The notes under the pieces were generated by a model. That model searched no databases. It saw nothing but the letters and a program-made list of their open reading frames with translations, and was not told the DNA's origin. DNA of 64,000 nucleotides, from positions 52,886,001 through 52,950,000 of the forward strand of contig OZ286460.1 in NCBI GenBank assembly GCA_965644265.1, given 5' to 3'. Of the stretch, positions 1-50,614 are shown in pieces (the stretch's first letter is position 1; every line of letters starts with the position of its first letter). Position numbers and translations under genes: made by a program. This DNA is from Glycera tridactyla (lineage: Eukaryota).

Positions 1-1249
1 TTGCATGTGAACACAGTTAGAATCGGTGGCACGGCATCTTAGACAAATCCAGAGGGGGTAAAACACCCTTGTGCACGCTCCTTCACGGCCTCCGTGTGTA
101 CCAACAATACCTGTGTTTTGTGACTGGCGTCAAAACTGTGTGGCTCACCCACTGAGTCGTTTGCCACTCGAGGGGCCTAACGAGATGACCTGGCCACCGC
201 TCGCAGCACGTGGCCCTAAACAGCTCCCATGCAATGCTCCCAGACCCAACTGCTTTGCTGATAAAAGTCACCAGCATGGGTGCTTTGACCAAGGCGTCTT
301 AGGCACAGCAATATTTGTCCGGCTCACCTTTCCTATTGTGCGGCTAAATTGCTTAACTTTTTCATTGCTGCCTCATACCAGACCTTTCTCCAATTACAAA
401 TACTGCAGTTGTAAATAACGAACGCTTGTCTTAACAAGTGTATACTCTCACAATGATTTCACACTGACACCACTTTTGCAGTTTTGTTTCAAATATGGCA
501 TTTTCAGTTTCATTTTGCTAATGAGAACAAGATGAGAATTTCAAAAGAAATTAGAGAAATCCAACCAAAGTAAAATGCTACTTATTTTGGCTTCACTTGG
601 CACATTACAGGACCTGTGGAGTATATGTCTACATTGATAAGCTATATTCATTTTATTCAAGAATACCCCTTATGAGATTATGGAGACTGACAGACTGACA
701 AACTTCTGTCTCCAGTAGAATGTTTGTTTATAAGAAACCTATCTTACTCAAGAGAATCTAAACTCAGTGATGAGGACAATCATAGCCATTACCGGTACCT
801 TTCCGAAACCTTTGCAACTGTATTTTGATAAAATGGAGGATATTTTTTGATGTCTGAATACAGCACCATTTGGAAATATGGCTGTGATCTTGACTCTGGG
901 GCGCTGTTCGGAGATTGAAGGGTGAGGTGGGGTGGAAGGCTGGCATGTTGGGCCTCCCGCTGGTGCCCTTATGAAGGCTTGCCCTCACCCCATGCTGGAG
1001 TGACTGACGGCAGAGAATATCTCTTTAATAACTGCATTCAATAGATTCCACAGCTCACCAAAGTTCTATTCTGATGATAGAAGTGATAGTCAGCTCTCCC
1101 CCATCTCACACCTATACCGTCATCATTAGCTAAAATCTACACCGGGAGCTGACAGTAGAACCCAGACCACTATACACCTTATCTGATCAAACAACATCCA
1201 TGACCATTCTACTTCCTACAGCACAGTTCACCCACCCACCACCAGCTTG

Positions 1250-1309
1250 CCTCAACCTGTTCTTTTCACTATCTGTCCTCAACTTGTTGTTTTCACTATC
1301 TTTCCTCAA
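1250..1309 (+). repeat. 27-bp tandem repeat, 2.2 copies
   Basis: cctcaacctgttcttttcactatctgt / cctcaacttgttgttttcactatcttt / cctcaa. Confidence 0.85.
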
Positions 1310-4300
1310 AACTTATAAATAAATTAGTGTAACACATACACCAGGAGAAAAAAACTACTAAAAAATCACTATATCATCAAACTCCCAAGTTCTACTCCAT
1401 TCTGACTGATGCCCTGATCCAGTTTGAGATGATATTCAGGTATCCTATCACCTCAATATTCACAAATTGCATCACTCACTATGCACATTTCAACTGTGGT
1501 ATAAAAGCAAAAATATATCCCTGTAACAAATAATCAGGGACCTTCAAAGTCTCAACCTCCAGCCCTAACATAAAGCCACTGAGAAATAATGTGTATCTTC
1601 CACAAGAGGTTGATTCGTTGGACATATCATCCAATATCATAAACCCAAATGTTGAGTAATTTGGCAGCTGGGATTTTTTCAAAGCTTTGAGATGATAGGG
1701 AGAATCACAGTGCTATGTATTGGATGTGTCTCAAGAATGCAACTGGTGTAAGATTATGTTCCTCTCAACCATTTATGCTAGATTCAACTAGAAAATTGGA
1801 CGTATGAGTGAGTCCAGGCATGTAACAGATGTATATCTAAATTGAGTCATCAAAATACATGTGCAGATTGTTATCTTTCACAAAAACAGAATATCGGTTT
1901 TTGAGGGGATCAGTCACATTTAGGACATTGAAAAAGCGCACATCTGAAGAATGAGAAAGGCTCTTAGCATCTTATTCAACAATTCACGATGGAAGACAAC
2001 TCTTCCTTCTCGAACAATCCGAACCATTTCCACCGAGAGATTCTGGTTGAAAAACTGACTCATGTCCCCTGAGCTGATGAACAGAGCTGCAAAATGCGAG
2101 CGATCTTTGGGGGCACAAGGCATACCCATTAGCATTTTGAAAACATTCATATCAGTTGATCTTCGGGGAGAGAAATATGATAATTAATGCACATATTATT
2201 TTAAAAAGCAGTGTGTGTGGCAGCGCTTGCTTTCGTATGCATGAGGCCCTGGCAGTCTGGATTAACCCTTTTCTATTCACATTCATCTTCTGTCTAATTT
2301 TCCAACCAGTTCATATTTGGATGAGGATAAAGCGCATCGAAATAACCTGCAGCAATATCATGCAAGCTGCCATCCTTACTCTATTTTCGGCATTTACAGA
2401 TGTGAGGAAAGTGATAATTGACCGATGATTCAAGTGGAAGAGGTTTTTTGTGGACATCTTCATACAGCAGAAGAGCGCCTGTGGAAATGTTTCATCTGTA
2501 CATGAGTACATTTTCTCACAATTTACACAAAATATTGCCATCTATATTCCCTGATTCCAACAGTAAGATGACTGGACTGATGAAATCATCTTCTATAATG
2601 ATTTTGGAACTCTTGAGATATTATAAAATTGATTCAGTTCAGAAAATGTCATCATGGCCCATTTCAATAATATGGCTGATCTCTGTTATCTTTGTGACTT
2701 TTCACTTTTCACAATTTGGATGACTGAAGTAGTGTGGTGAAATGCAGAGTTGGGGAGGAGTGGAGTATTTGTGAGACAAACCCAGGGAGTTAACTGGCAG
2801 CATGGAAATCAGCCAGCATAATCCACCAGCCCTGCCGAGCAACATTAAAAACACATTTTATGCTGGCAATAAAATGCAGCAAGATGGCTATTGGAAGAGG
2901 TGGAGCATATTTTGCAGTCAGTGATGTTAATTTCTAGCTGCTATTATGAAGTGGAATCTTTAACTCTTTAATAACTAGCTTGATTAATTGACCATTTGTT
3001 GACTACTCTCATTTGCGAGGCCAGAGAATGTTGTTTCCCCAAATTCGAAACTACTTTATAGACTTCTATCTTGCCACCCAATTCTTGCATCTATTCTGCA
3101 GTCTGGGGTGGAAATATTCATAACAATGAAGTCCACAAATGCTGCTTATCCACTATACATAAAGTAATTACCAGAAAATTTAGGCTCCATGGTTTTTGTT
3201 GACAGAGAACAATTCCCCAGATAAGAGAATAATGTCTCTAATGGCAAATATACATGTTTGTGAGCTGGCATGGTAAGCTGGTGGCCAAGTTTGTAATATC
3301 TACTGGGTGATTGTCTATTTCCGGTGAAATGCACCGAAGCCGAGTGGGCGACCAATCATCCTCGCAACCCAACAATCCTAACTCATTAGCAGCACCAGAA
3401 AATCTTCATTTTCTCGTAATTAAACCTGCCTGCATGTGACAGGCAGAAAAAGGCTCAGATGAGAATGAAGAGGCTAGCAGAGTTGGGGGATTGGTGGGGG
3501 GGGGGCTGAATGGGGGAGGGGGTTGGCCATCATGTCAACTCCAGTTGACTGTAAGTGACAGCATGGCTAGACTCGCTACCTCGGGCAACTTCACCTACTA
3601 GGATCCCCAATAACCCTACTACACTAGATTCCTAAATATTTCATCATATATTCTTCACAAGGATTCAAACCTAGAAAATGTAAATATTGACCCTTAATAA
3701 GAATTTTTGTCTACCCTACCTCACACCTTTCAGCTAATTTGAGGTTCTGCTGAGCATTCATCTACATTTAATCAGTTCGCTTGCATATTGCTCATGTGCT
3801 GAATGAACCTATCCTTTGAGATCAAAGATGAAAAATTCTCATCTCATCTAGATTAATTCTTTTTTACCCATATGTTCTCTTATATTGCCAAGTCAGGAAA
3901 TTTGTCAAGAAGCAGATGCCCAACAAAGAAGTATGCCACTGTTATGCAGTGCCACAAGTAGAGTACATCTCAATCATACCCATGCATATTTGGTGTATTT
4001 CGGTGTACTTCTTTGAACCCAACATGGAACTAACTATATCCTCTGGCCTAGGCATTTTGTGTCATCATCTTTGATCTACTTGTCACATGAGTTAGTGACC
4101 AATGAAATCAAGCAGCTTATATCAAGTGACCAACCACCAATCAGATTAACCAACAGATATCCGGATGGTCAAGTGACCAATCGGATTCATTTGTGAACAG
4201 ATGTTCCCAATAATCAGCAGAATTATGATGCAAATGTGCCAAGAGACAAAGAACTGATGCAAACAAAATAGAGACCTAGTAAAGATGAATCTGTTGAAAG

Positions 4301-6704
4301 CATGGGCAAATCTCAGAAAAAAAAGTCATAGGAAAATTTTGAAGCAGGCACAATCAATATCCTCCTCAATCTGTCCTCTAATTCATCTAAACCAGAACTG
4401 AAGACGAAATGGACTGACTTTTGCAGCGGTAGAAGGATTTGTTTTGAGTAAATGCCATGGGACTGCATAATTCCTCATCTTGTGAACTGAAACGGACTGA
4501 ATGGGGGGACTTTCAAACGGAATGTTTGCATAATGATCTCCATGACAATGGAGTTAATTTCTGATTAGACGATTTGTTATGATTAGCATCCATCTTGAAT
4601 CTCCCGTCTTGAATTTAAACACAATTAGAAAATTCATCACAGCGTCTGGATTGTTGAACGACTGGTTACGGCACGAAAATCATAATATTAATGTGGCGGC
4701 TGGCTGCTGTAACTATTATCCACAAGTTAATACTCATCGCTCAGCTTTCCAGTTGCCGCCACAATAACATTATTCATACGCCACAGCAACATAATTCATA
4801 TGCATCATTCTTCAATTCATTGCTCCACACATACTCTTGAGTAAAGGCAGTGACAGTACCTCTTTGTTTTGAAAATAAATTCTAAGCAAGTATATAAAAT
4901 TCAGAAAATAAAAGTCTGATCATTTGCAAAACAAACATGAAATCACCAATATAGGCATCTCTAAAGTCTTCATTATCCTTTGTGTATCTTTCCATCATGT
5001 GAATTTTTCAAACAAAATACAGTGATCACAGTACACTGATGATTCAACATTTGTATGACCAGATAAATGTGCATAAATTGGAGTTTTTTGCGCTCCGAAT
5101 GAGATTTTCAGTCATTGGATATCAAAAATTTAATAGGCAGGTGAAATCAGTGACGATAATTACACCATGCACATCGTTTGAATACTTCAATGCCCTCCGA
5201 GATGGTAGTTGGGTATTTGAAAGAGGCTATTAGTTCTTCTATTCCGATTAGTTCTCCATCTCCTCTGATCACATACTTGTAGGGAGGGCCAGTATCATAT
5301 AACCAACAGCAATCTCAAGTTGGCTATAACAACGCCTGTAGCTGCCTATGGGCTGTGGAGGAGGCAGAATTTTGGCCGGCAGGAGTGTAGCCAGTAATGG
5401 AGCCTTTGTGCTAACAGTTTGCTGAGAGAGATGGTGGAGATAGGATCAAGGCCTGGCTCTGTGTTTATTGGTTCATTCCAGCTCAAGACCCAGCGCACAG
5501 ATCCCAGCAGTCTGCCAGATAAGCGTCCCTCTTCACTATCCTCGGGATTCCTGAAACTGAAACCTTATTGAGGCCCACATTTGGGGTCAAAGGTTGGGTT
5601 AGATTTCCGCTGCTACTCAGCCTAACATCTTGAGGGAAGTATCTGGAGTGTGCCCTGCCCTTCCCCTGTTTCATGCCCAGAGATCATTTTATACCATCAT
5701 GCAATCACTAGACGATCAATGCCCTTGTGGCCCATTTGCAAATAAAAAGATACCCATGTGCAGAATTATGGGTTTCCTCTCAAGATCAAACCCACTGTTG
5801 TGACATCAGAGAATATCACAATACAAGATTAAATCATCTCCACACATCACTCTCTCAAACTCGGTCAAGAATGGGTTACATCAACATGTTCCCCATTAGA
5901 AAAATACACACCGGATTCAGTTTACTAAGTCTATTTTCTTTCATGTGTAGATTCTGATGGGCACCCTACTGTCTTGTATTCAGTAACACTGAGATGTTGT
6001 TCATAAACAAGATCAGGCAGGAAAAATTGTTTCAATTTGGCATCGGATATTTTCACTTGAGAATAACATCAATATTTGTAAAATATTATCTATCCCATTG
6101 AAAATTCATCATTAGCTGATGGAAATGAAATACTCTATTGGAGAAAATATTTGGTTCAACTGTATATTTCTTCTTTTTAAAACAAAAACCGCTCAACATA
6201 GTTAATCAAACTAAGTGGGTGGTTCCTCGATTGTTTTTGTTTTTTATATCAGCAAACTTCATCAAATCCATTTTCATAGCATGATGGAATTAGGAGTGGC
6301 CGTGACAGTTCACAAACATAAAATGTCCGCTGATTTTATAGTTTGGAGAAGTACTAATTTCCGACACTGATGGATGTAACCGGCATCATGTCATAAGTGT
6401 GGCGGGGACACCCAGTACCTGTGACACCATCAAGTGTCACAGGAAAACATCTCCCTCAAGCAACTTGTCACTGAGCTGGTTCTCTGTCATAAAGATGGTC
6501 ATTTACTGCATTGTTAATGGCAAAAATAACCATGGACATACTGTATACAACGACCAGGATGATGGATGACACGTGGAAACAATGACACTAACATTCTCAC
6601 CAAATCTACCATATAAAATTGATATCTATAGTCAATTCATGTCAAGATATCCCCTGCCCCATGGTTTTTCAAGCAGATGAGCTATACCTGTTATCAGTCA
6701 ATTA

Positions 6705-6839
6705 CAGTCACACCTGCTTAACAGACCACCTCTATACAAAGGCCATCCTGGGCTGCGAGATTATTTTTTATCGTATATAACCTCTCTACAAAGGCCAATT
6801 GATGCAACTAAGGGTGGTCTTTGTAGACAGGTTCGACTG
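6705..6839. mobile_element. Tc1/mariner(pogo)-type MITE, related to the 53189 copy
   Basis: TA flanks; TIRs CAGTCACACCTG / CAGGTTCGACTG (10/12 match); internal GACCACCTCT...GGTGGTCTTTGTAGACAGG; 135 bp. Confidence 0.8.
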
Positions 6840-7972
6840 TATACAGACAGATACATAATGATGGAGACACAGGGACACACAGAGAGAATAGTTCCCATAT
6901 TCACACATCAACTCACACGCTAACTATTGTTGACTCTCTGCTGCACACTTCACACACAAGGCTGAGGTGTGAACAAGTGAGTAAACATTTGCGTTCAAAT
7001 TACCCGGCAATATAAAAGTCCTGGCATGCAACAGGTATCATAAATAATCCTGTGGCCAGCACACACTCGACCTGGAAAATCTATGTTGCACACCTTTGCC
7101 AGTCAACAAATTGGTCAGTATTTTGTGCGGGACCATAAAGCCATCATGAGCTAGGATTAGCAGCCTCCCACCCTCCGGTGTGTTATTCACCACATCTGCA
7201 CAATGCTACATCCTCCGCTCACTTTACGATCCTAACCTACTGTAAACCCATCATATTAACTTCATAAAACTTGTCTGAGGTCCTATGAGATATATGGAGC
7301 CCCCTCTGACAGCACACCACTATCTCTAGCTGTGACAAATCATGGTGAATATCATAAATATACCTTCCATTCTCATACTTATATACTTTTCATCATTTTT
7401 CTATATTTGTTTGTGATGAAACACCACTCATTTGGAACACCCAGTACATGCCAACTGGATTCTAAAAGATCAGCCACATATGGGAGTGGCTTAGCTATGC
7501 GGCACATGATTGATCCACTTCCACCCTTTCCAAAGAGCAGGGGATTGTCTCTGACATGAGTTTCTCTTTATGAGCAGGTCGTTTTCCAATTTTAGAGTTA
7601 ATATATGACCTTTACTAATGTGCGTCCATGAGGACAAGTAGCCAGAACACCCAATCCCCCCATTGACCTATTTGTAGAATGTCTAACAGTTGTCTTACAA
7701 GTTTTTCTGTGGCCATGTTTACATTGATAAGGCCTATCTTATCGGCCAGCTCACTCTGTTGGCACACTAAATTAGCTCATACATCTATAGTGTATCTCAA
7801 GATATAAACCCGTGTACATTTCACGTACATTTCACATCCTTACAACTTATAATTTGTTCGCTGTGCCTGGATTCTGTCACTTGTTTCAACACCCCATCTG
7901 GCAATCTCTATCTAGCCTGTGTGTAATTTCTTCTTCGAGGATCCAATTTATCCATCATCTCGAAGTAAAACC

Positions 7973-8155
7973 NNNNNNNNNNNNNNNNNNNNNNNNNNNN
8001 NNNNNNNNNNNNNNNNNNNNNNNNNNNNNNNNNNNNNNNNNNNNNNNNNNNNNNNNNNNNNNNNNNNNNNNNNNNNNNNNNNNNNNNNNNNNNNNNNNNN
8101 NNNNNNNNNNNNNNNNNNNNNNNNNNNNNNNNNNNNNNNNNNNNNNNNNNNNNNN
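7973..8155. other. Assembly gap (N). Other gaps: 23820-23964, 24371-24506, 26617-26797, 32636-32782, 43950-44148, 50480-50614, 58210-58355, 58458-58639
   Basis: Runs of N, several next to simple repeats. ORFs spanning them (X-containing) are artefacts. Confidence 1.
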
Positions 8156-8214
8156 TTACAAATAGGGCACAATGAACTTATCTGATGAGAGGTAGAGATA
8201 TCAGTAGATGAAAC

Positions 8215-8245
8215 ACTCACCTAGGGAACAGGGAAAGAACAAACA
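8215..8245 (-). promoter_or_regulatory. Candidate recursive splice site (ratchet point): 3' splice site fused to a 5' splice site
   Basis: Minus strand reads gttatgtttgttctttccctgttccctag|gtgagt: a long pyrimidine tract, TAG at 8223-8221, then a consensus donor GTGAGT at 8220-8215, in the Meis sense orientation. Confidence 0.6.
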
Positions 8246-8693
8246 TAACATTAATAAATAATCGTGAAAGTGTGCATAATTGACAACACAGGGCAAAATT
8301 ACGAACTGTATACTGGCATGCATGGATACATATACTGAAGGGGTGAGTATTTTTAGCTGAGAGTCCAAGGAACACTGAAACTGAATGTCAAATTGGCCCA
8401 ATTCTCAGCCTTGGCATCCGGAAAATGTCACCCTGCTGAGCACTGTACACATGGTGATCGGCACATATATAATTCTCAACTCGGCCCTTCTTTGTCCAAA
8501 ATCATCACATGAGAGAAACCTTACTTCAAAACACAGTTTTAGAGATTATCCCATATTACAATACTACTAGGATCTCTCTGGTAAAACTCATTAAGAAAAC
8601 TGTTCCCATGAACAGATTTCAGTTTTAGCTAAATATATACGATGGTCAATTATAGAACTTTGGAAGAGATGGCAAAGTGAGCAAAAATTCATC

Positions 8694-22265: not shown

Positions 22266-23964
22266 TGGGTCATACTATGCATACATTTTGAAATTTCATT
22301 ACAGTCAAATATCTGCAAACAGAGAATAGGAATGAAGCCTATACAGATAGTATTTGAAACAGAAGCAGGTAATTTTTTTATCGAAGTCTTTGAACACACC
22401 TACTACGCCATTTATTCCGATCACTGCCAACTTGTCAAGATTAGATGATGATCACAGGATATGGTCCGGAATTCAACATTTCAACATCAGCGCTCATTCA
22501 CGGAACACGAGTTTAAAAATGCATTAACCTATTTCAAAAGGTTACCTGCTATAAGCGAGCGTAATAATAACGAAATGGGGTCCGAGTTTTTATCTTAGCA
22601 CTCAACGCCAACAGAACGTGAACAGGATGCCGAATACAGAATACGCTGAATCTTGAAAGGTCATTTTCAGGTGGCTCCCACTGTGTCGGGGTATAGACGT
22701 GAAAATGGTTGGCATAATGGAATGCCATTCAAATGCAAATGAAGCAACACCAAGGCACAGCAGTTAGCGAGTCAGACGGAATTCCATTTGCGCTCACCTG
22801 TTTTAAGTGAGTGCTGTATATATGATGATCGGCTAATCACACCCAGTGCAGCCCTGATTATTCTCCCAGCTCCCCGCCTCATAATCACCTCAACGCCCAT
22901 AAATGCAAGTGGGTTCATTTCCAATGATCAAATAATAAGAGCCATATTAGGTAATGCTATTCTTGGCATCAAGCAACCCCAGTCATGCATGGACCTAATC
23001 TATCCAGTTTCTGTAATGTTCGAAGAAAAACTCATTCCTTCAGTGATGATATTGAGATGAAGCAAAATATCCAGTGATTCTATTTCCTAAACAATCTCAG
23101 CAAATTGAGATTGCTGATTGTTTGGACATCACCAATGATGGGAACCAAAGTAGGTGATAGTCCAAATCAGATTGACCAGAAAAATGTATACCTTTCAAAT
23201 AATGTGAGTTAACATCTAAAACATCATAGAAGCATATTAGTAAGCACAGACATGACAATCTTTAGTAGGTCTATGAATCCCTGATTAATGAATCCCTGAG
23301 ATATTTCCATGCAAATGATGCTGATTATTTTTGGGATATCACAATAAATGTACATTCCTCTTTGTTTGTATAGTCAAACCTACCATGCAAACTCACACAG
23401 AAGAGGCCACTGAGGGTCTTCTTCATTTACAATAATATAATATATTTCTTGACAAGAAATCAGCTCTAAGTGAAACCATTCTTTGCTGTCCTTAAATGAA
23501 CAAAACCATAAAACCTCTAAGACACATTGTCTGAATCAAGAGAGAAGTGGCAAACTGGTGCACTCTTCTACAGGATGTTGTTATCAATTCAATGGGAATG
23601 GTTCAATCCAACACTGAATTGACAATAAGTAACCTTTCACTTGGAAAGAAAGGCAAATGGGTTGTTTTTGACCGGGAGTGCATGGGGAGGTTTTGGGATG
23701 TCAAGGTGACAAATAGACAGTGGCACAAACACAATCCTCCTGCTCATCCTGGTTCTAAGTTCAAACTCAGCCCAACTCCCAGCACTGACCCAATTATCCA
23801 ACCTATCCCTGTGTGTGGGNNNNNNNNNNNNNNNNNNNNNNNNNNNNNNNNNNNNNNNNNNNNNNNNNNNNNNNNNNNNNNNNNNNNNNNNNNNNNNNNN
23901 NNNNNNNNNNNNNNNNNNNNNNNNNNNNNNNNNNNNNNNNNNNNNNNNNNNNNNNNNNNNNNNN

Positions 23965-24090: not shown

Positions 24091-26115
24091 TCATGTGAGA
24101 TATGGGGAATTCATATCCTACATGAAAAGAGATTTCGATATATCTTTATATTCACCATTCACGACAATATGATGATCATAATACTGTGGGCTGAATGCCG
24201 AGTATCTGATTTTGTCCTGGAATGTGAGCTGCAGAGGGTGACACACACATATGTGCGTGCATGATGGTAATGTATCAATACTATGGTAATTATCAGTCAT
24301 TGATTGGTCGCCTGTGATATAACAATGATAACTGATCATATCATGGTACTATGACACTGTCTGCTCATGCNNNNNNNNNNNNNNNNNNNNNNNNNNNNNN
24401 NNNNNNNNNNNNNNNNNNNNNNNNNNNNNNNNNNNNNNNNNNNNNNNNNNNNNNNNNNNNNNNNNNNNNNNNNNNNNNNNNNNNNNNNNNNNNNNNNNNN
24501 NNNNNNCTAGAATTAGACAGGAACCTTTGAATGTCCTGCATGGTCAGCTGTATATCTTCACAATGACTGACGACCAAGCCAGCCAAAAAGTGTGTAGGGG
24601 TAATCAGGTCAGATTAGCTTACATCACATATGATTGACAGTCTAAAGACAATCAGATTATCAGATCTAGACAGCTACCATCATAATCTAACTAGTGTTTA
24701 CAACCTGTCACACAGATACCCTAATCGCATGATCTCCGTATCTCATCCTATCACCATTCCCAAGAAGAAATTTGCATTCTTTGACCAAATGATGACAATG
24801 TTCAAAAAGTTTTTCAAAATCTCTCAAATTCTCCGTAAATGTTTGCGGTATAGTAATTGTACACACAGGAACAATTTGTACCCATGTGTAAGACACTAAC
24901 AGTACCACTTGATTTCAACAGGAATGGGTTCTGTGCCATTTATCTAAATACGGAGGATCGAGTTCCGTTAGATGGGTACATTTACTGTAGTAAATTGCCT
25001 GGGTGTTTAGTAAAACTTCTGTCATTACACATTGTGCAAAAGATGGCACTGAACAGGGCTGTACGTAATCGCCTCAACATAATCATTTCAACGTGTGGTC
25101 ACAAGCTAACCTATAATTTGATGTGATTCAGTAACGCAGACACATGTGAGCGCCATCGTCATTATCCGAATGCATGACATGCCACTGTTGCTGTAATCGC
25201 ACACGCTTTTGTGCTGTGTGCGGCATCGATGACACATGCGACCCACGGCTAACAACAGATCCACACGGACCGGGCGGGTAAGCAGGGACCTGGCGGTTCT
25301 GTGAGCGTTCGTACACATGCGAACGCCCCATAACTGTTAGACATTGCCCGTTTCCCTCATGACCCAAGCCCAACCCTGCCACCCTGTAACAGTTGCTGGT
25401 TCACAACTGACAATTATAAACAAACACATCTCGCCACGATCATCCTTGCAAACCATCGATTTCAACCATCGATTAACTATTCAGGTTCCACCAGAGAGCG
25501 CTATTGACCTTTCAATACGCATTGATCCGCACATGAATGTACCCTTTGTCTGTATTTCGGAGCCTAATGTTATTTTTTATACCAGGCTAGTGATGTACAT
25601 TGACTTATATCTGTTCACTGCTGAATGCATCCAATGCACATGTGGACAGTCAGACGGTGTGTTGTGCAACAGCCGACACAAGTCCTATTTCAGTTGTGAA
25701 GCACAATCTAAACCCATATCCAGATGCCTCAGACATCAAAACTTTACAGCCCATTTTATGACAATAAAACGTTCTTCCACCCATTTTTTACCAATTTTTT
25801 TTTTACTCCAAATGTCGAATGCAGCCCATAGCATTCAATGTCAGTCATTTTGTCCAAGGGCAGATGTCAACTCCAACTGTGCTCAGAAAATGAACTATGC
25901 AATAAAACTTATTTTTGACAAGTATCCTGAATATTCTGACTTGTTGAGCTAGGTTTTTTGTCAAAATTTACAGACTTGTATATAACCACTATGATGTCTG
26001 CCAGTGTCCTAGTGTCTGTCTAGTGAGGCAATTAGTTTGAGAAGGGTGTTGAGGTCATCCTGCAAGCTTGTCTCATCATCACCATCATCTGTGTCATAGT
26101 TTGCCCATTTACCGC

Positions 26116-26347: not shown

Positions 26348-27253
26348 AGATGCTGCTGCTGGTGTTCCAAAAAAGAAATGGCATTAAATGTTTCTCATTC
26401 CTATGCCCATCACTCTCACTTTCACTCCTTCCAAGCACAAACTCCAATGTTCGAGTCCTTTAAAAAAAGTTTCAAAAAATTTATTAAAAAAAACAAAAAA
26501 ACATTCAAGTTCTATGCTCTGACATGTCAAACCACTTCTGCTGGTCCTGATCAGAGGCTTTGCACCCCCCCCCCCCTTCATGTTTCCTTGTTGAGAATCA
26601 CAAATATGACAGGCACNNNNNNNNNNNNNNNNNNNNNNNNNNNNNNNNNNNNNNNNNNNNNNNNNNNNNNNNNNNNNNNNNNNNNNNNNNNNNNNNNNNN
26701 NNNNNNNNNNNNNNNNNNNNNNNNNNNNNNNNNNNNNNNNNNNNNNNNNNNNNNNNNNNNNNNNNNNNNNNNNNNNNNNNNNNNNNNNNNNNNNNNNTCT
26801 GTCTCTACCTGCTTGTCTCTCTGTTTGCCTGCATCTGTCAATCTCATTCCGTGAGAAGATGAAAAGGCATAAAACTGCTGAAAACTTCAGGAAATGAAAA
26901 TAATCTTCAAGACTTGGGATGTCTTGGAATTCTAAGAGATGCATCTTTGGAATCTGTGCCAGAAAAAAGTATCAAAGAGAAGAATGTAGCTGCATGAGGC
27001 AGGATTAGTCTTCCACATATAATAACACTCCACCTTTCACTAAGAGATAACAAACTCACAAACACATGTCCCTTATAGTTCGGACAGATTCTTCTACCTA
27101 CCACAGCCTGTCTTGATTAAGCAAGATTTTTAATTGGAAGATAAGCAAGTCAGTGATATATAAACACAATTTCAAAATGTGTCTATGAGCGATCCACCAT
27201 TATATGCTAGTGGAAGGGCATGCTTCAAACCAACATTTCTTGCGAGAACAGTG

Positions 27254-32572: not shown

Positions 32573-32806
32573 TTAGTGTGTGTTAGTGTGTGTGTGTGTG
32601 TGTTAGTGTGTGTGTTAGTGTGTGTTAGTGTGTGTNNNNNNNNNNNNNNNNNNNNNNNNNNNNNNNNNNNNNNNNNNNNNNNNNNNNNNNNNNNNNNNNN
32701 NNNNNNNNNNNNNNNNNNNNNNNNNNNNNNNNNNNNNNNNNNNNNNNNNNNNNNNNNNNNNNNNNNNNNNNNNNNNNNNNNNTGCATCTGAGCAAGTGTG
32801 TATGTG

Positions 32807-34527: not shown

Positions 34528-37500
34528 TTCAAGATTCCAAGATACTAGCCAGAACCACAGTAAATCCAGATTTTTTAAGTCAACAGAACCACAACCAAAG
34601 GATTGGTCTTTGATCTTGAGGCACACAATAATTATCTTCCTGGGTGATCTGTGAAAATACTTTTGGGTTTGAACTATTCTGCATGGACCCTGGCCTAGTT
34701 TCCTGCTGATTTATTGGTTGGTGAGCTCTGCAATATGTCCACCATCTTGCCTACATTAATCCACTACGGCTGAGAACAAATCTGGCTGAATCACTGATGG
34801 CCAAAGCGGCTGAGTTGATCAGAGGCAATGATCTTGTTCGGTCCAGCCATAACGGCCATTGTAGCTTTATTTAACTGCAGAATGTGGGACAAAAGTGTTG
34901 TGCTTTCCATTAATGGCAACATTAGCCCGTCATCACTGGTAGCAGCAACATCATTGCTTCTCATCACCATTATTGGTCAGCGCTGGAATGGGGTGATGAG
35001 GGGGTGAAAGCAAGGGAGGAGGGCGAAATTTAACTACCTCACATCAGGCTCAGTAAAATAGCACCAAATCTATGGGACTCTCATATCCAACAGCAGCTTT
35101 GTTGGTTGCGTAGAATTCATACATCAAATTTGATGGCATCCATAGATCTGAGGTCTTGAATTTTAGAGTAGGAATCAAGATCACTTCAGTGTCATGGTAC
35201 TTGATTATAAACATTATCTCAAAAATATTGGGAATCCTGATAGGATGACATTCAAATTCAGGATCCATGGAATCCGATATTTCATCTGCTTCATGCTCAA
35301 TATACCCCTTAAATTTTCCCCATTGTTTCCAATTCTCGGCATCCTGAATGGCCCAAATTGGTCGCCACCATTGAAACATGCGCTATTTTCAGCAACTAAA
35401 GTTTGGAAGCTGAGTGGACATTATCAGCAAATTGTGCATGTCTGTCTGGTGCAGCGAGGCATCGAGTGGGAGTCCGTGCCTCTCTACGCACTGCATTTGG
35501 CCGCATCGATTATCGATAGTGTTCAGTCGAGTGTGGTCGACATGAAAAGGTGCACCGTAAGCCCCATCATAATGGCTTGAGTGGTGCACTGCGATCATGT
35601 CGTCAAAAAGCATCAGGAGTGAACGGCATGAAATGCTGCCTATACACCTGCCCTCTAGCCAGCCGGCAGCGCACGGCTCCTGCTAACGCTTCACATTGAC
35701 ATTTTTAACCCCTCTAAGCGCTCCATCTCATATCAACGCTTATCTTGGCAAAAAAGCCGAAAACAATCCTCGATGGAGTAAAACTGATCAGTGGTGTCAC
35801 TGGATTGAAATCAAATTTCATAAAATGTGACCGAATGCTGGAAAATATTTCCAGAGGAAAATTATTTTACAGCAATGACTCGATGTAGGAGCCACTTGCT
35901 GTAGGGATAATCCAGATGACGATAAATGAGATTATAATGGAACTCTATCACTCCATGAGACTCGACTTGCGACTTTCAATCAGTTTTCAGAAGATTTTGC
36001 ACTTCGATTCCAATATAGCAATCTCCTGAACATAAACAAACTTGCACAGAGGAGATGACAATATGATGCTTTTATCAATGTTGAGAATGAAAATGATGAA
36101 CTTTGATTACAAGGCTTGCACGAAATAGCATTCAAGATGAGTCATAGAATGACCATGGTCTGTTTAGATATGACAGGATTTGCTGTGTTATGGTAACAGT
36201 GAGGTGTGTGTATTGCTCGAGGGCACGGTGGTCCGCTGACACACAGTTCTGCTAGTTTAGTCCAGGTAAATGAGTGGAATTATCGGGTTTATTAAAGTGA
36301 AATGAAGTGAGGATGATGAGGGTAGCTCAGGTATGGGCTGTGAGAGATGCTAATCAATGTTTGATGACAAACGCAATGATCGTGAAGCACCGAACAGTGC
36401 AACTTCAGTTGCCGAACAGGCGCCCGTTAGCCGGCAGATGAGTCTTGAACCAGTCATGTGCAAGTGACTGCAAATGGGTTTGTGAAAGCCTTCCACACCA
36501 GTGCCAGTGCCCAATTGCAGGGCCACTTGGTGCTAAATGTCCCACTCATGATGCAAGCTAGAATGCACCGGGATGAAAGTCCTAGACGAACGCGAGCGTG
36601 CAGTTGAGCGCACTCGGCGTCGGCGTCCCATCTGTGACGCTCTTCGTGAGAACCTTCCCCCATAGGACACTCCTATCTCCTACCTAGCCACTCTTATAAT
36701 CAATTCCTAACACAGTTGGCACGCCAGCACAAGCAGGCTAATCAACACTACCAGGTCGGCATTTCCAGTACTTTCACCAAAGACAAGTGAAGCTTACTAT
36801 GACAGGGATGACAATGATTCCATCTCAAGTCCCAGATGCCTTCTTGCATAACACCTCTTCCACTATTATGTCGTGAGATCAGAGATGACGGTCACCTAAC
36901 GGGGACTTAATATGTCTATGTGGGATTGTGATGACTCTGAAGGTGATTCATGATTATAGACCTCAGACCGAGCCACAGCCACCTCATGACCTGATACTGG
37001 ACGCATAAAACTGTCAAACTTGAATAGATTTCCTCATCAGGATTTTTCGATTTGTTGGTCCCTTACCAGCTATACAGCAGCATGTGCTATACTGAGATGT
37101 GTGTCTGATGTCTGGGAAGAGGTAATACCCATTGTCTAATGACCACCATCTTCATAAACCTTAATCAGAGATGGTGCAAAACTACCATTATGATAGCCAC
37201 CTGATGTGATACATGATGGCAGTCACTATCCAAAAATTATTTCAGAATATCTTTGATCAGGATCTGATTAGAAAGAGATGCTCATGGATGAAGAGAATGA
37301 TCACATCTTAGAAAGTGAATACTGCTCAATATAGCACACCTCCCATCTGCCTTAGACTACATTACTAATAAGTGATGCCATGATTATGCAATGGGACAAC
37401 GATTCTAATTCTTTCACCAAACCTTTGTCTTACTAGAAGTTGACACAAACCTGACTGAATTTGGCTAATTCATTCACAGACAGATGAATTCAACATTACA

Positions 37501-39127: not shown

Positions 39128-39856
39128 CATCACACCTCCAACGACATAATATCACCTTCACCATTATCTCAAGTAGCCTGGTTCAAATCATAGTGGAGAC
39201 TGAAAGAAAGCTCCCTTTCAGTAGGAGCATAAATGAGAGGCCTCTTTCCAAATTGATATATTGAATCATAACCCGAAGAAGACCTAAACTTTTCTCATCA
39301 CAGGTTTTCAGTGTTGTTAAAATTTCGGAGAAGGTACCATATTTTGGTGAGGGAATAGCAGAGGCGCAGGCACTGATGGAATGCATCGGAGCTGGTATGA
39401 ATGGGATGGCATATTCGACTTTGATACACTACATGACAAAATATTGATCGAGGCCTGAAATATATTTATGGATTCATGACACACACAATATCCCATGAAT
39501 ATCGATTGATCGGCACCCGGATTTGTGTTCCTGGCTGCCATTGACAGCAAAAGATGAAAGGGGAGGGGGCCAGTGCATGGGGCCATGGCAATGGAGACTG
39601 AGAATTAAAATCTGCCAGTATGCCTCACAATGGCTGAAAAATACCTGTAATATGAAACCCTGACTGCTGATGCACATGTTTGAAAATAGTGTCACCTAGT
39701 GCCATGCCTCAACATCTAGTGGTGTCACTAGCGAAAGTCATGAACAGCCCCCCTAAATCCATATCTGAAATTCATCAAAGATGGATGCTTCCGCCATTGT
39801 TGAAAATAGAGAAGAAGGAAAAACGGAAATAATGAAAGATCTCTACTTACATTCAC

Positions 39857-39992
39857 CAACTTCGCTGCCATTATCTGCATTCTGAATTGAACTATTGCTG
39901 GGTGCACTATGAGGGCCGGGCGTATCACCAGACCGTGTTGACAAAGCATCATCGGCTTGACTAAATGATAAGTTTCCTTGTGAGGGTGGTCG
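39857..39992 (-). CDS. Meis: Internal coding exon of Meis/homothorax (TALE homeobox gene); linker between HM domain and homeodomain (vertebrate exon-7 equivalent)
   Basis: Acceptor ggttttcattctgtgtgttttcag|CGA (phase 0) and donor GTTG|gtgaat (phase 1). Translation RPPSQGNLSFSQADDALSTRSGDTPGPHSAPSNSSIQNADNGSEV-G resembles, from recall, vertebrate Meis1 [31 protein letters not shown] and Drosophila Hth RPPSSSLSY...DD...TPGP. The 0/1 phases match the vertebrate exon as I recall it. Confidence 0.9.
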
Positions 39993-42900: not shown

Positions 42901-45900
42901 ACTTTATTCTGGGCTACACAAATCTTGGACACTGCATGAATTTCATGATGTCACCCCACCATGAAAACGATAACACATAGAGCATCTCAGGAATTTCCTT
43001 ATGAAACCTGGGGTAACAGAACTGAGGGGCTGGATCAGCAAGAGGGAACATGAATTTGCACTGTAGGGCAAAGATGGTATTTCTATCAATGCAAAGAAAG
43101 AAACAATGGGACACCTCACGATACTCTTCCCGCATGTTATAACAGATCAAGCACCCAATAGCGCAATTCTGCAGATGTGAGAGGGTGGGTTTTAAAGAAT
43201 GAATGTGGTATTTCTTCTCTATAGGATACATGCTCTGCCTGAGATGTGATTCACCGCATGTGACAAGGTGAATGGAGGGCTGCGACATCCTAGACAAGTT
43301 ATAAAGGCCAGCTGCATTCCATAATCTGAGCAGAGATCGAGCCAAGTTTTGGGGACACTGGATCCTTCCAGCATCATCACAGTGGACCACTAAGTGTTTG
43401 TTTCTCCCTGTCACCAAGTGTGGCATCTATGGATACAAACTGTATTCTCCGTCAAAGTTGGATGACCCATTGGATTTTTCCGTGTTCTTTCCATATTATT
43501 AAGCTACCAAACTACCCCAAATTCACCCTTCTGCTCATCCTCCCAGGATCCCCCATCCTGCTCCACATCAGCATCAGATCCCCAGCTTTCCTTCAGTTGT
43601 TAAGGGCCCTAACATCCTGGGCAGCTGCAGACAGGGGCTCCCACATCACCATCCATCCATCCTAGCCCACATCATAACAGAACATATAGACGCACACAAA
43701 TATGAAAACAAACTCTATATTTTGAAGTGTGAACAGCTGTTGTAACAGCAGATTATAAACAATCTGTGGGGTTGTGTAGCTAACATGGTATATCCTTCCA
43801 CCAGTCTCTGCCTCCGCCTTCCCAACTGCTACCACCCCCACCACAAAAACTGCTCCAGAACTACCAGCGGATGATATAAACAGTTATCAAGAACCATCTG
43901 GTGGGAATGGATGGAGTCTCAGCTGGTAATGAATTTCACAAAATTTTTCNNNNNNNNNNNNNNNNNNNNNNNNNNNNNNNNNNNNNNNNNNNNNNNNNNN
44001 NNNNNNNNNNNNNNNNNNNNNNNNNNNNNNNNNNNNNNNNNNNNNNNNNNNNNNNNNNNNNNNNNNNNNNNNNNNNNNNNNNNNNNNNNNNNNNNNNNNN
44101 NNNNNNNNNNNNNNNNNNNNNNNNNNNNNNNNNNNNNNNNNNNNNNNNGATGGATGGCCGGAAAGACAGATGCACACACCCATACCCACACTCACACACC
44201 AGGTTTTGGTGTGGAATAAAACATGTGCATCAAAACATTATAAGCCACAAAGTTTGAAAACATATGCGTGGCAGGCAATCTGTGTTAAAGAGGCATGATT
44301 CACTGGTAAAATAACTGAGCACATTGTTTTGCACTATAGCATCAGCTACAAACCAGAATCTGCCATTTCAGTTATCATATTTGCAGCGATTAACTTAATT
44401 AAGTAGAGGGGATAAATCAAATTAGTCGGGTATGAAATACGACTTGCGAGGCGGCAGAAAACTGTGCGTATTTGAGTAAGGCATCATCTGTGGAGTCATT
44501 AATGAGAAGGCGCCCTGGCAGAGATGGCGCTACAACCCATCTTTTGGGAAACCGGTAAACTGTCGTCCACAGATGATGAATCTTTCTGCGAATAATATCT
44601 CACCATGAATACCTACATCAATTAAATCTATCATTTCCTTTACAAAAGGATGAAAGCAGTGCATTCAGGTCATCTAATCAAGTCAAAGACATATGAATGA
44701 CCTGATAGCTTCACAAGAATACCACATTCTGACATGAAATTGGTATGCATTCTACTGCTAAACAATGAAAAATCGCAATATGATATTTTGAACGTGAGAA
44801 CCAAATGCTGTTGTTATGAAATTTAGCACATACGGAAAAGTATATGATTTGAGGCATTATTCTACCAAATTCTTCCACAAAATGTGTCCGGAGTCTGACG
44901 AGAAGCTGCAAAATCTGACAAGTTAAATTGTATGTCAGCATCAAAGAGTTAATGTCAGCGTAATGATGCTACACATGGAAATATGAAATCAGAGAAGAAC
45001 GCCACACATTGCTAGTCTCATGGGGTAGCTGCCAGCAAGCCAGCAAATGTGCGCGTAGGATGCGCCAACTGATGGCTTCGTCGTAGTCCTCATCGCTTCG
45101 GGGACATGCCAAATGTGGCAAGTGCTTTGAGGACATGCCAAATAGAATGCTTGCTTCGAGGATCTCTCCGAGAATTATTACTCATTAACCACAGAAGAAA
45201 AATGACCTACATCTTAGCATCTTGGAGTTGCCAGTAATGACAAAAATCTGTCACCATCTTGGAATGTTTTGACTTGAAGACCCTCTTAAAAATAACACAG
45301 ATTGATTACAATGAAACATTACTCCAATCTCATCCAATGATTTTCTTGATTCTGAAATTCTCATGAAATTCGGTATTTCTATACACTGCACTGTCCAAAT
45401 TGTATCAAGGCCATACAACTTGTTCAAAAGGCTTACAAAGGCCCAATCAATTTGTCCCCAAATCTGGCCAGTTACCACCAGATAAGTACAACCGTCTGCC
45501 AAGTGGTGGAACACTCAAGTCCTTTCTGAAAAAAGTGGTTGGTAACTCTCAGATCTTGACTTCTAAAAGAAAGGTAATCTCCCACTAAAGGAGCAAAAAG
45601 GATTGGACAAAAAAACGCAACTGATTAGATAGTGGGTGGAGATGATGGTCAGCTTCGCGAGACAAACCACTCGACCTACACCATGTTTCTCGCAGAAACT
45701 TCGAGCTGCCATGCCGGTGCTTTAGTTACCACTAATACTTGTTCTAGCTACTTGACAGGCTCGGAAACCTGGTTCTTGAAACAAGATTACAGCTACTATC
45801 GATATGTCAAGTATTTGACGAAGATGTCGCAATCTGATAATGGACATGCTGTTGAGAATCCAATGAAATCCTTCTTGACTGATAAGTCTATCATTTTATT

Positions 45901-48900: not shown

Positions 48901-50614
48901 GATGGTATTAAACTTCTGGGGAATCTAACAAGAGTGAAAAACCAATTCATCGTTCATCAGGTCATGTCTGAACAGTGATGAGCTGAAGATGTGGATGTGC
49001 AAGTCAGAAAATTTGAATCTTGCAAACTTGAATTCACAGGAAAAACTGCTATCATGCTTCCGAATTTTTACCTCAAAATATTTTGGATATTCACGATGCA
49101 TGTATTTAGACCTAGATTTTCTTTAAAATGATGCAACAGGATTTTCGATATGCCAATATTCAGCTAAAGATGGAAAATCAAGAGTGTTTATGAGGAGCGT
49201 GTCAAAGAGAAGCAGAATATGTATGAAATATCAAGTGTTAAAGAAAAGTCTACCGCATCACCACACTAACACCATTTAGAACTTCATGTAGAAGTCACAG
49301 TTAGAACCACTACGAGAAACAATGTGCAAAACTGACCTTTAAAATGTCGCCAATTTTTCCTGCGAATGAGCCCATATGATTCCCCTCTTTAAAATCCGGG
49401 CTATTAAGACCCTGAAAGATGGCAGGTGAAATTAAGTTCCAGGGTTTCAACCCAGATGGCAAAATAATGATAAGAAGCAATGAAATGACAACAAAATAAA
49501 GAACAAGGAGAACTGCAATGTCTTCGAGGAGAACTGAAATAAAAACATAGGTTTAAAAATCACAGAAACCTGCAGAATAAAGTACCTGCCACCTGATCCC
49601 TAGCATCTTGGGGAAACTGCCAAAAATAGGCCAGTGGTTATTTGTGAACTTATCCAGGAATTGGAAAAATCACTGCTTATCCTGCCGAAATTCGCATTCT
49701 GGGCCTGAAAGGTTAAAATAACCTTTCAGTAGTGAGAAATGTGAGTCTTGGGAAACCTGATCTCATAATTGTCCATAAATATATTAGCAATGAAAGTACT
49801 GTTAGAAAGCATGAGTGTGCGTATGTGGGGGGGGTCACAGGAGATGCTTTTTAGGGGACGCCCAATCCATGTATTCATCGAGCTCCTATTTCTCGCAGAT
49901 AGCATCTCCACCAAATTAACAGTACCTTCAGCAGGAACTAACCACATCATGTGTGTGTGTGTGGGGGGGGGGGGGTGTATGCGTGTGTATGCATATGTGG
50001 CTGGGTATGCATGTGTGTCTCTTGCATATGCATATGTATGCCTGAGTCTGCATAATAAGTTCTGAGCCCCTATCTTGGTTGGTGTTCAAGTTGTCTGTAG
50101 ATTATTTTGAGTAATGCCACTGCTTGGATGCTGAGTTCATAGGCACCTTGTTGCCAGACTACCAAAATGCCCATAGATGTCAAGTGAAATTTTTGTATGC
50201 ATGCAGCACACAGAGCATTGACATATCCGGTGATTTATTTTCAATTATCACTCTTCGAGGCAAGTGCGACATGCTCTAGACTGCAGTATCAATATCAGAT
50301 ACTTGTCTTCTCTTTTGATCTCAGCGAATGCCGCCCACATGGACAGTGATGGATATCACGAGGCTCAGATTTCTCGCTTTGCATACAAAATCCAGCAAAT
50401 AAATGGGGTGAAAAATCAGGAAAAACAAGAAATTTCTTCAAAAAGAAGAATGGTCGTCGGCTTACAGCAGAGAGGTGGTNNNNNNNNNNNNNNNNNNNNN
50501 NNNNNNNNNNNNNNNNNNNNNNNNNNNNNNNNNNNNNNNNNNNNNNNNNNNNNNNNNNNNNNNNNNNNNNNNNNNNNNNNNNNNNNNNNNNNNNNNNNNN
50601 NNNNNNNNNNNNNN

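Follow-up and report, generated by a model that had tools for sequence, protein, structure and literature searches.

A recursive splice site, here referred to as site A, probably splits a 60.2-kb intron of the Meis gene of Glycera tridactyla into two segments of 31.6 and 28.6 kb. The site is located on the minus strand of the 64-kb stretch of DNA that was analyzed (G000:C4:52886001-52950000, hereafter the window, to which positions refer unless a contig is named), and a further 60 kb below the window was examined, giving a total of 124 kb of the Meis gene. As read from the sequence, site A consists of a 3′ splice site that is fused to a 5′ splice site and followed by a predicted 39-nucleotide (nt) cryptic recursive splicing exon (RS-exon), and this exon would be defined by a presumably unspliceable U1 site at its downstream end, CAG/ATAAGT (slashes within sequences mark splice junctions). 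The composite of the fused core and the downstream CAG/ATAAGT, together called a cassette, is far beyond chance and is found at a second site within the same gene and at many further sites across the genome.

Site A Opens a Predicted RS-Exon in the Middle of the Intron

On the minus strand site A has the sequence ...tttgttctttccctgttccctag/GTGAGTGT, and its junction falls at 8221/8220. It is located 31,636 nt past the first donor of the upstream Meis exon (39857/39856) and 28,611 nt before the 3′ end of the intron, which corresponds to 52% of the intron, and this mid-intron position fits the recursive-splicing reading. The surrounding 265 nt are single-copy in the 2.04-Gb genome. A preliminary description of this DNA had reported a strong acceptor fused to a consensus donor 31.6 kb past the Meis exon, the regeneration of TTG/GTGAGT when that exon is joined to it, and a reading frame of G-E-C-F-I-Y-stop after joining. 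All three observations are borne out: the core is TAG/GTGAGT with 18/20 pyrimidines upstream, the exon end ..GTTG joined to 8220 gives TTG/GTGAGT (the second of the two tandem Meis donors gives AAT/GTGAGT), and the frame closes at TGA 8203-8201. The same description had treated the junction as a zero-length AG/GT site; the fused splice sites are real, but a more fitting description is that they open a 39-nt cryptic RS-exon. A canonical GT donor 40-80 nt past site A was not found, with no GT[AG]AG between 8214 and 8156 and masked sequence beyond.

The Cassette Occurs Twice in Meis

The motif AGGTRAGT is present exactly twice on the sense strand of the 124 kb, at site A and at a second site (site B). 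Site B displays 19/20 pyrimidines followed by CTAG/GTGAGTGT, a 43-nt RS-exon and then CAG/ATGAGTAT. Both sites therefore carry 18-19/20 pyrimidines upstream, CTAG/GTGAGTGT and a CAG/ATRAGT at +39 and +43, respectively, and they are alike only in a 12-nt core. Three further AGGTRAGT motifs are found on the antisense strand, with 7-12/20 pyrimidines upstream and without CAG/ATRAGT.

The second element shows the same restriction. CAGATRAGT occurs twice on the sense strand of the 124 kb, both times just downstream of the recursive splicing (RS) cores of sites A and B. The baseline of approximately 2 CAGATRAGT per 124 kb per strand gives a chance of approximately 5e-4 that one is located 33-66 nt past a given site. 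The only other CAGATRAGT motifs in the 124 kb are antisense, at window positions 36438 and 45482 (plus strand), and have no upstream acceptor-donor core; these two served for the baseline.

A Genome-Wide Class of Cassettes

A genome-wide search with the pattern YYYYNYAGGTRAGT-N(25-60)-CAGNTRAGT returned 170 matches versus 23 in the control. Among the matches listed, satellites excluded, the variable +1 base was A in 40, G in 6, C in 4 and T in 2, although base composition alone would predict A and T to be about equally frequent at this position. With A fixed at +1 and a gap of 5-120 nt, 68 matches versus 9 in the control were obtained, representing 65 distinct sites. When the -3 base of the second site was allowed to be A, G or T (DAG/ATAAGT), 29 further matches versus 5 in the control were obtained (A 21, G 7 and T 1, compared with approximately 50 for C). 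The resulting order of preference at -3, C > A > G >> T, is that of real donors. Overall, about 90 sites in the genome (65 strict plus 29) share the cassette design. A strict second site was present on 12 of the first 100 strong cores among those listed, with approximately 0.2 expected.

Site A is one of the 65 strict members and matches the pattern of the class, YYYYNYAG/GTRAGT followed on the same strand by (C or A)AG/ATRAGT at 33-66 nt. The length of the RS-exon (measured between the G of GTRAGT and that of CAG) falls between 33 and 66 nt in 59 out of 65 sites, within a possible range of 14-129 nt. Neighboring cassettes that are less than 200 kb apart are found on the same strand in 11 out of 11 pairs and are spaced by 27-134 kb.

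Forty-two cassettes were compared in their sequence. The tract is T-rich back to approximately -25, with T at -5 in 39 and at -6 in 36 of the 42. The fused donor is GTGAGT in 41 out of 42; as their second site, 36 cassettes carry ATAAGT and 6 carry ATGAGT. None of the 42 RS-exons contains GT[AG]AG, which occurs within the next 130 nt in 4/42. RS-exon lengths show no preference for multiples of three (10/42), and the cassettes have no common sequence beyond the splice signals.

Satellites that carry CAGGTGAGT in each unit were identified at G000:C1:1535233-1539609, C4:22149760-22150603, C17:102520071-102521284 and C28:41208365-41208826, with periods of 38, 52, 48 and 64 nt, respectively. These arrays have to be set aside because they dominate naive counts of paired donor motifs, and they were left out of the +1 base count, the second site there being the next repeat unit. 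A small tandem repeat at G000:C34:80764524-80764648 (minus strand) contains one RS core followed by three CAG/ATGAGT with a period of 26 nt.

Three pairs of related, co-oriented cassettes were identified, with site A not being among the pairs. Two of them (L028/L029 and L030/L031, 31-36 kb apart) provide a substitute for a cross-species comparison and show 87-88% identity over a span that opens at -30 and closes 9 nt beyond the A of the AT site. The alignable island starts approximately 60-80 nt before the junction (by eye) and extends over approximately 130-150 nt around the cassette, and its flanks are unalignable. The identity is confined to the cassette, indicating that the cassette was kept while the surrounding intron decayed; judged from their sequences, the pairs look like old duplications of intron segments of which only the cassette was retained. 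The third pair (L053/L054) is similar by inspection of the sequence listing, without an alignment.

Two other origins of the motif were considered and ruled out. A repeat or transposon disagrees with the single-copy 265 nt around site A, the restriction of the similarity between sites A and B to the 12-nt core, and the 42 cassettes being alike only in their signals. A GATA-type DNA motif (AGATAA) disagrees with the ATGAGT variants (6/42), the donor-like -3 preference and the strand consistency.

The Meis Host Gene and Its Giant Intron

The host gene was identified as Meis because of two downstream exons on the same strand, with exons searched singly. The exon that follows the giant intron begins at window coordinate -20391, 20.4 kb below the window (acceptor tttgcag/AC at G000:C4:52865609, L013:9609), and its peptide is identical (19/19) to solved MEIS1/2 homeodomain chains. 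The exon after that (approximately -32959) matches the Pfam family Homeobox_KN above the cut-off. No homeodomain exon is located inside the 64-kb window. The exon upstream of the intron presumably corresponds to the vertebrate Meis exon ...DD.AST.S.GTPGP...GDNSSEQ/, with which it lines up.

The whole intron measures 60,247 nt and is in phase 1. The upstream exon ends ...GAAGTTG/GTGAAT at 39857/39856, and both of its tandem donors keep the frame of the next exon (AC GAT GGT...), the first resulting in ..SEV-D-DGADN and the second in ..SEVGE-Y-DGADN. With the first donor (TTG/GTGAAT) the exon boundary agrees in length with the vertebrate one. The window contains nine masked N runs of 135-199 nt (7973-8155, 23820-23964, 24371-24506, 26617-26797, 32636-32782, 43950-44148, 50480-50614, 58210-58355 and 58458-58639). 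The features of the host intron and of the cassettes are listed in table 1.

Table 1. Positions of the Cassette Features, the Host Intron and the Related Cassettes
Feature	Position	Strand	Remarks
Ratchet core TAG/GTGAGT (site A)	8215..8223	-	3′ splice site AG 8222-8221 fused to 5′ splice site GTGAGT 8220-8215
Polypyrimidine tract	8223..8243	-	C/T at 18/20 bases before AG
Candidate branch point ttaAt	8250..8254	-	Matches yUnAy; putative A at 8251, 30 nt before AG
Cryptic RS-exon, predicted	8182..8220	-	39 nt; in-frame TGA at 8203-8201; length within class mode of 33-66 nt
CAG/ATAAGT, 5′ splice site consensus with A for G at +1	8176..8184	-	Complementary to U1 at 8/9 positions; presumed unspliceable
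Masked N run	7973..8155		Begins 21 nt after CAG/ATAAGT
Meis exon before the homeodomain (RPPSQ...NADNGSEV)	39857..39992	-	136 nt; entered in phase 0 and left in phase 1
Acceptor of this exon, ttttcag/	39993	-	
Tandem 5′ splice sites	39845..39856	-	6 nt apart, both phase 1: TTG/GTGAAT (39857/39856) and AAT/GTAAGT (39851/39850)
First intron segment	8221..39856	-	31,636 nt; would be removed by step 1 of recursive splicing
Second intron segment, window part	1..8220	-	Full length 28,611 nt; ends outside the window at the acceptor of the homeodomain exon
Site B, second cassette	G000:C4:52826337-52826393 (L017:337-393), window coordinate approximately -59614	-	Within the next long Meis intron, which follows the second homeodomain exon
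Related co-oriented cassette pairs	L028/L029, C11:17.06 and 17.10 Mb; L030/L031, C17:70.91 and 70.94 Mb; L053/L054, C39:24.41 and 24.45 Mb		31-37 kb apart

U1 Genes and Predicted U1 Pairing

The U1 small nuclear RNA (snRNA) genes form a tandem array of at least 42 genes with equal scores and a period of approximately 2.1 kb on the minus strand of G000:C4:77045576-77171102. All of the 30 array copies that were fetched carry the canonical 5′ end ATACTTACCTGG. A dedicated variant U1 snRNA that would pair perfectly with AUAAGU (C8 to U) was rejected: the compensating change was not found with the pattern ATACTTATCTGGYNNNGGRGA and the 30 fetched copies are canonical, although all of the scored genes belong to the array and divergent variants may exist.

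The AT sites are predicted to pair with U1 about as well as the real Meis donors. The predicted duplex energies are -5.4 and -7.4 kcal/mol for the AT sites of A and B, respectively, and -5.4 and -7.0 kcal/mol for the Meis donors TTG/GTGAAT and AAT/GTAAGT. The fused donor of site A reaches -12.5 kcal/mol, and its GTGAGT is the strongest predicted U1 site of the cassette. When joined to ..GTTG it changes to -11.1 kcal/mol and when joined to the second donor (AAT/GTGAGT) to -7.4 kcal/mol, so that the predicted pairing of the regenerated donors equals or exceeds that of Meis's own donors.

Proposed Mechanism and Alternative Explanations

The order of events that best accommodates these features would be the following. 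The strong 3′ splice site (tract and TAG) would be recognized by exon definition, aided by a U1 small nuclear ribonucleoprotein (snRNP) that binds CAG/AUAAGU 39 nt downstream. The upstream Meis exon would then be joined to 8220, which would remove the first 31.6 kb and create UUG/GUGAGU. Finally, this regenerated donor would be used and the RS-exon would be removed together with the remaining 28.6 kb, leaving no trace in the mRNA. The regenerated donor would be the only spliceable one nearby, since A occupies +1 of the downstream site. A site that lacks GT would thereby allow exon definition to help while avoiding the inclusion of an exon with a stop codon. It is about an even call that many giant introns of this animal are removed at such cassettes (at least two in Meis), with an RS-exon closed by an A(+1) U1 site and not by a weak GT donor, an arrangement that would replace the safeguards of donor competition and the exon junction complex (EJC) and that may be widespread in its lineage.

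The cassettes could alternatively act as functional decoy exons, in which binding of U2AF/U2 to the acceptor and of U1 to the dead donor would stall the intron and either control the output of Meis via intron detention or shield the long intron from premature cleavage and polyadenylation. A downstream site without GT would indeed be unable to complete exon definition into a spliced exon, a conserved and strand-specific class fits any function at the RNA level, and there are known cases of U1 sites that are bound without being spliced, e.g., an intronic one that promotes the trans-splicing of mod(mdg4) (PMC4387717). A decoy has no need for a GTGAGT fused to AG, yet this hexamer is present in almost every cassette (41/42) and is its strongest predicted U1 site, and the spacing of 27-134 kb between co-oriented cassettes fits the subdivision of long introns. 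Decoy exons are therefore an unlikely explanation.

Much less likely still is that the acceptor at 8221 opens an alternative terminal or poison exon, resulting in a homeodomain-less Meis protein that ends ...SEV-GECFIY. The preliminary description had suggested such an isoform switch, and the in-frame stop six codons past the junction would agree with it. Homeodomain-less isoforms of hth/Meis are known, which also counts in its favor. The suggestion is not upheld: the product would gain a tail of only six codons, no AATAAA or ATTAAA is present in the 1.7 kb downstream (183 nt of which are masked), and no spliceable donor is visible after the 39-nt segment. Moreover, about 90 unrelated sites share the design with "exons" that are non-coding and indifferent to frame, and a general intron-processing element is therefore more fitting than an isoform switch. 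A peptide search with the 45-amino acid Meis exon identified no short product; this is weak evidence because the search covers proteins of 25-79 amino acids that share exact words.

A chance juxtaposition of splice-like motifs without function has to be weighed together with the points that speak against recursive splicing at site A. The core motif by itself is no more than chance: the two strands of the window together contain YAGGTRAGT twice, compared with 1.63 expected from shuffles, and across the genome the core with a 10-pyrimidine tract shows no excess (163 matches versus 150 for the reversed control). In addition, many windows were searched for the preliminary description. The lack of enrichment of the core weighs against site A, and the case therefore rests on the composite with the downstream CAG/ATAAGT. 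Four further points count on the same side. Site A carries CC and not TT at -5/-6, which places it in a minority within its class; the 183 masked nt that start 21 nt past the ATAAGT site could hide a canonical donor; the orientation relative to the host gene was checked for Meis alone among the class members; and the proposed use of site A in vivo draws on the genome sequence of one species, with U1 binding, the order of the steps and the inertness of A(+1) being inferred from general knowledge of splicing. Chance is nevertheless disfavored and very improbable, since a CAGATRAGT neighbor is expected at approximately 5e-4 per site, yet both RS cores in Meis have one, and since 12 of the first 100 listed strong cores carry a second site versus approximately 0.2 expected. 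The stepwise removal of the Meis intron that the preliminary description had proposed is thus supported by a genome-wide class that is strand-consistent and clustered, by conserved duplicates and by site B in the same gene, whereas the AG/GTGAGT core on which it was based is not enriched.

If site A and its class function as proposed, the cassettes would represent a third and simpler safeguard against RS-exon inclusion, beside donor competition and the EJC. They would also make it possible, as a natural experiment, to tell U1 binding (exon definition) apart from catalysis at the 5′ splice site, and they would explain the accurate processing of the developmental regulator Meis with introns of more than 60 kb. 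The strict motif offers a ready list of about 90 predicted sites.

Comparison with Known Systems

To our knowledge, good documentation of recursive splicing is limited to flies and vertebrates, and the animal studied here belongs outside the insects and apparently also outside the vertebrates. A literature search, incomplete in its coverage, yielded no relevant paper that treats recursive splicing in annelids, nor any that connects recursive splicing with AUAAGU/ATAAGT. The mistaken inclusion of the RS-exon, which usually contains a stop codon, is a recognized danger that flies and mammals guard against by donor competition and the EJC. The homothorax gene (hth) discussed below is the fly orthologue of Meis.

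The ratchet points of Drosophila (Burnette 2005; Duff 2015; Joseph 2018, 2021, PMC8605326) likewise consist of a tract and YAG fused to GTRAGT deep in the long introns of developmental and neural genes. The cryptic RS-exon in flies is approximately 50 nt long; its recognition requires the downstream donor that closes it, and it is removed when the regenerated donor wins the competition. One intronic ratchet point with a cryptic RS-exon is located in hth and was tested with a reporter (PMC8605326), which agrees with the recursive-splicing reading of site A. The Glycera cassettes resemble these sites in their short cryptic exon that ends at a U1-type site, with RS-exon lengths (33-66 nt) in the size range of the fly cryptic RS-exons, and in the predicted use of a regenerated donor that leaves nothing in the mRNA. 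TT is found at -5/-6 in 99.5% of the fly ratchet points (10.1101/006163), and T at these positions is also typical of the Glycera class, unlike the CC of site A. The main difference is the downstream site, which is a canonical GT in Drosophila; here, among strong-consensus sites, A at +1 outnumbers G about sevenfold. With A at this position, the donor competition that operates in flies would be abolished.

The RS-exons in long neural genes of vertebrates (Sibley 2015; Blazquez 2018, PMC6224609) are reported to work like the fly ones: they are defined first and then removed via the regenerated 5′ splice site. They also contain a premature stop codon that would make their inclusion harmful, as at site A, and they differ in having a usable GT donor, whereas no such donor is visible here, and in being sometimes included under the control of donor competition and the EJC.

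The hexamer ATAAGT at a donor-like position is also shared with U2-type AT-AC introns. These introns use /ATAAGT donors, require AC at the 3′ end and connect real exons, whereas the "exon" of the cassette is non-coding with a stop codon and ATAAGT is placed, as a rule, 33-66 nt after the fused AG/GT. The P element has pseudo-5′ splice sites that bind U1 and are not used as donors. In Drosophila mod(mdg4), the TSA element is likewise a complement of the U1 5′ end that acts via U1 binding and not as a donor (PMC4387717). Unlike the cassettes described here, the sites in mod(mdg4) and the P element have no fused acceptor-donor at a fixed short distance and do not belong to a genome-wide class.
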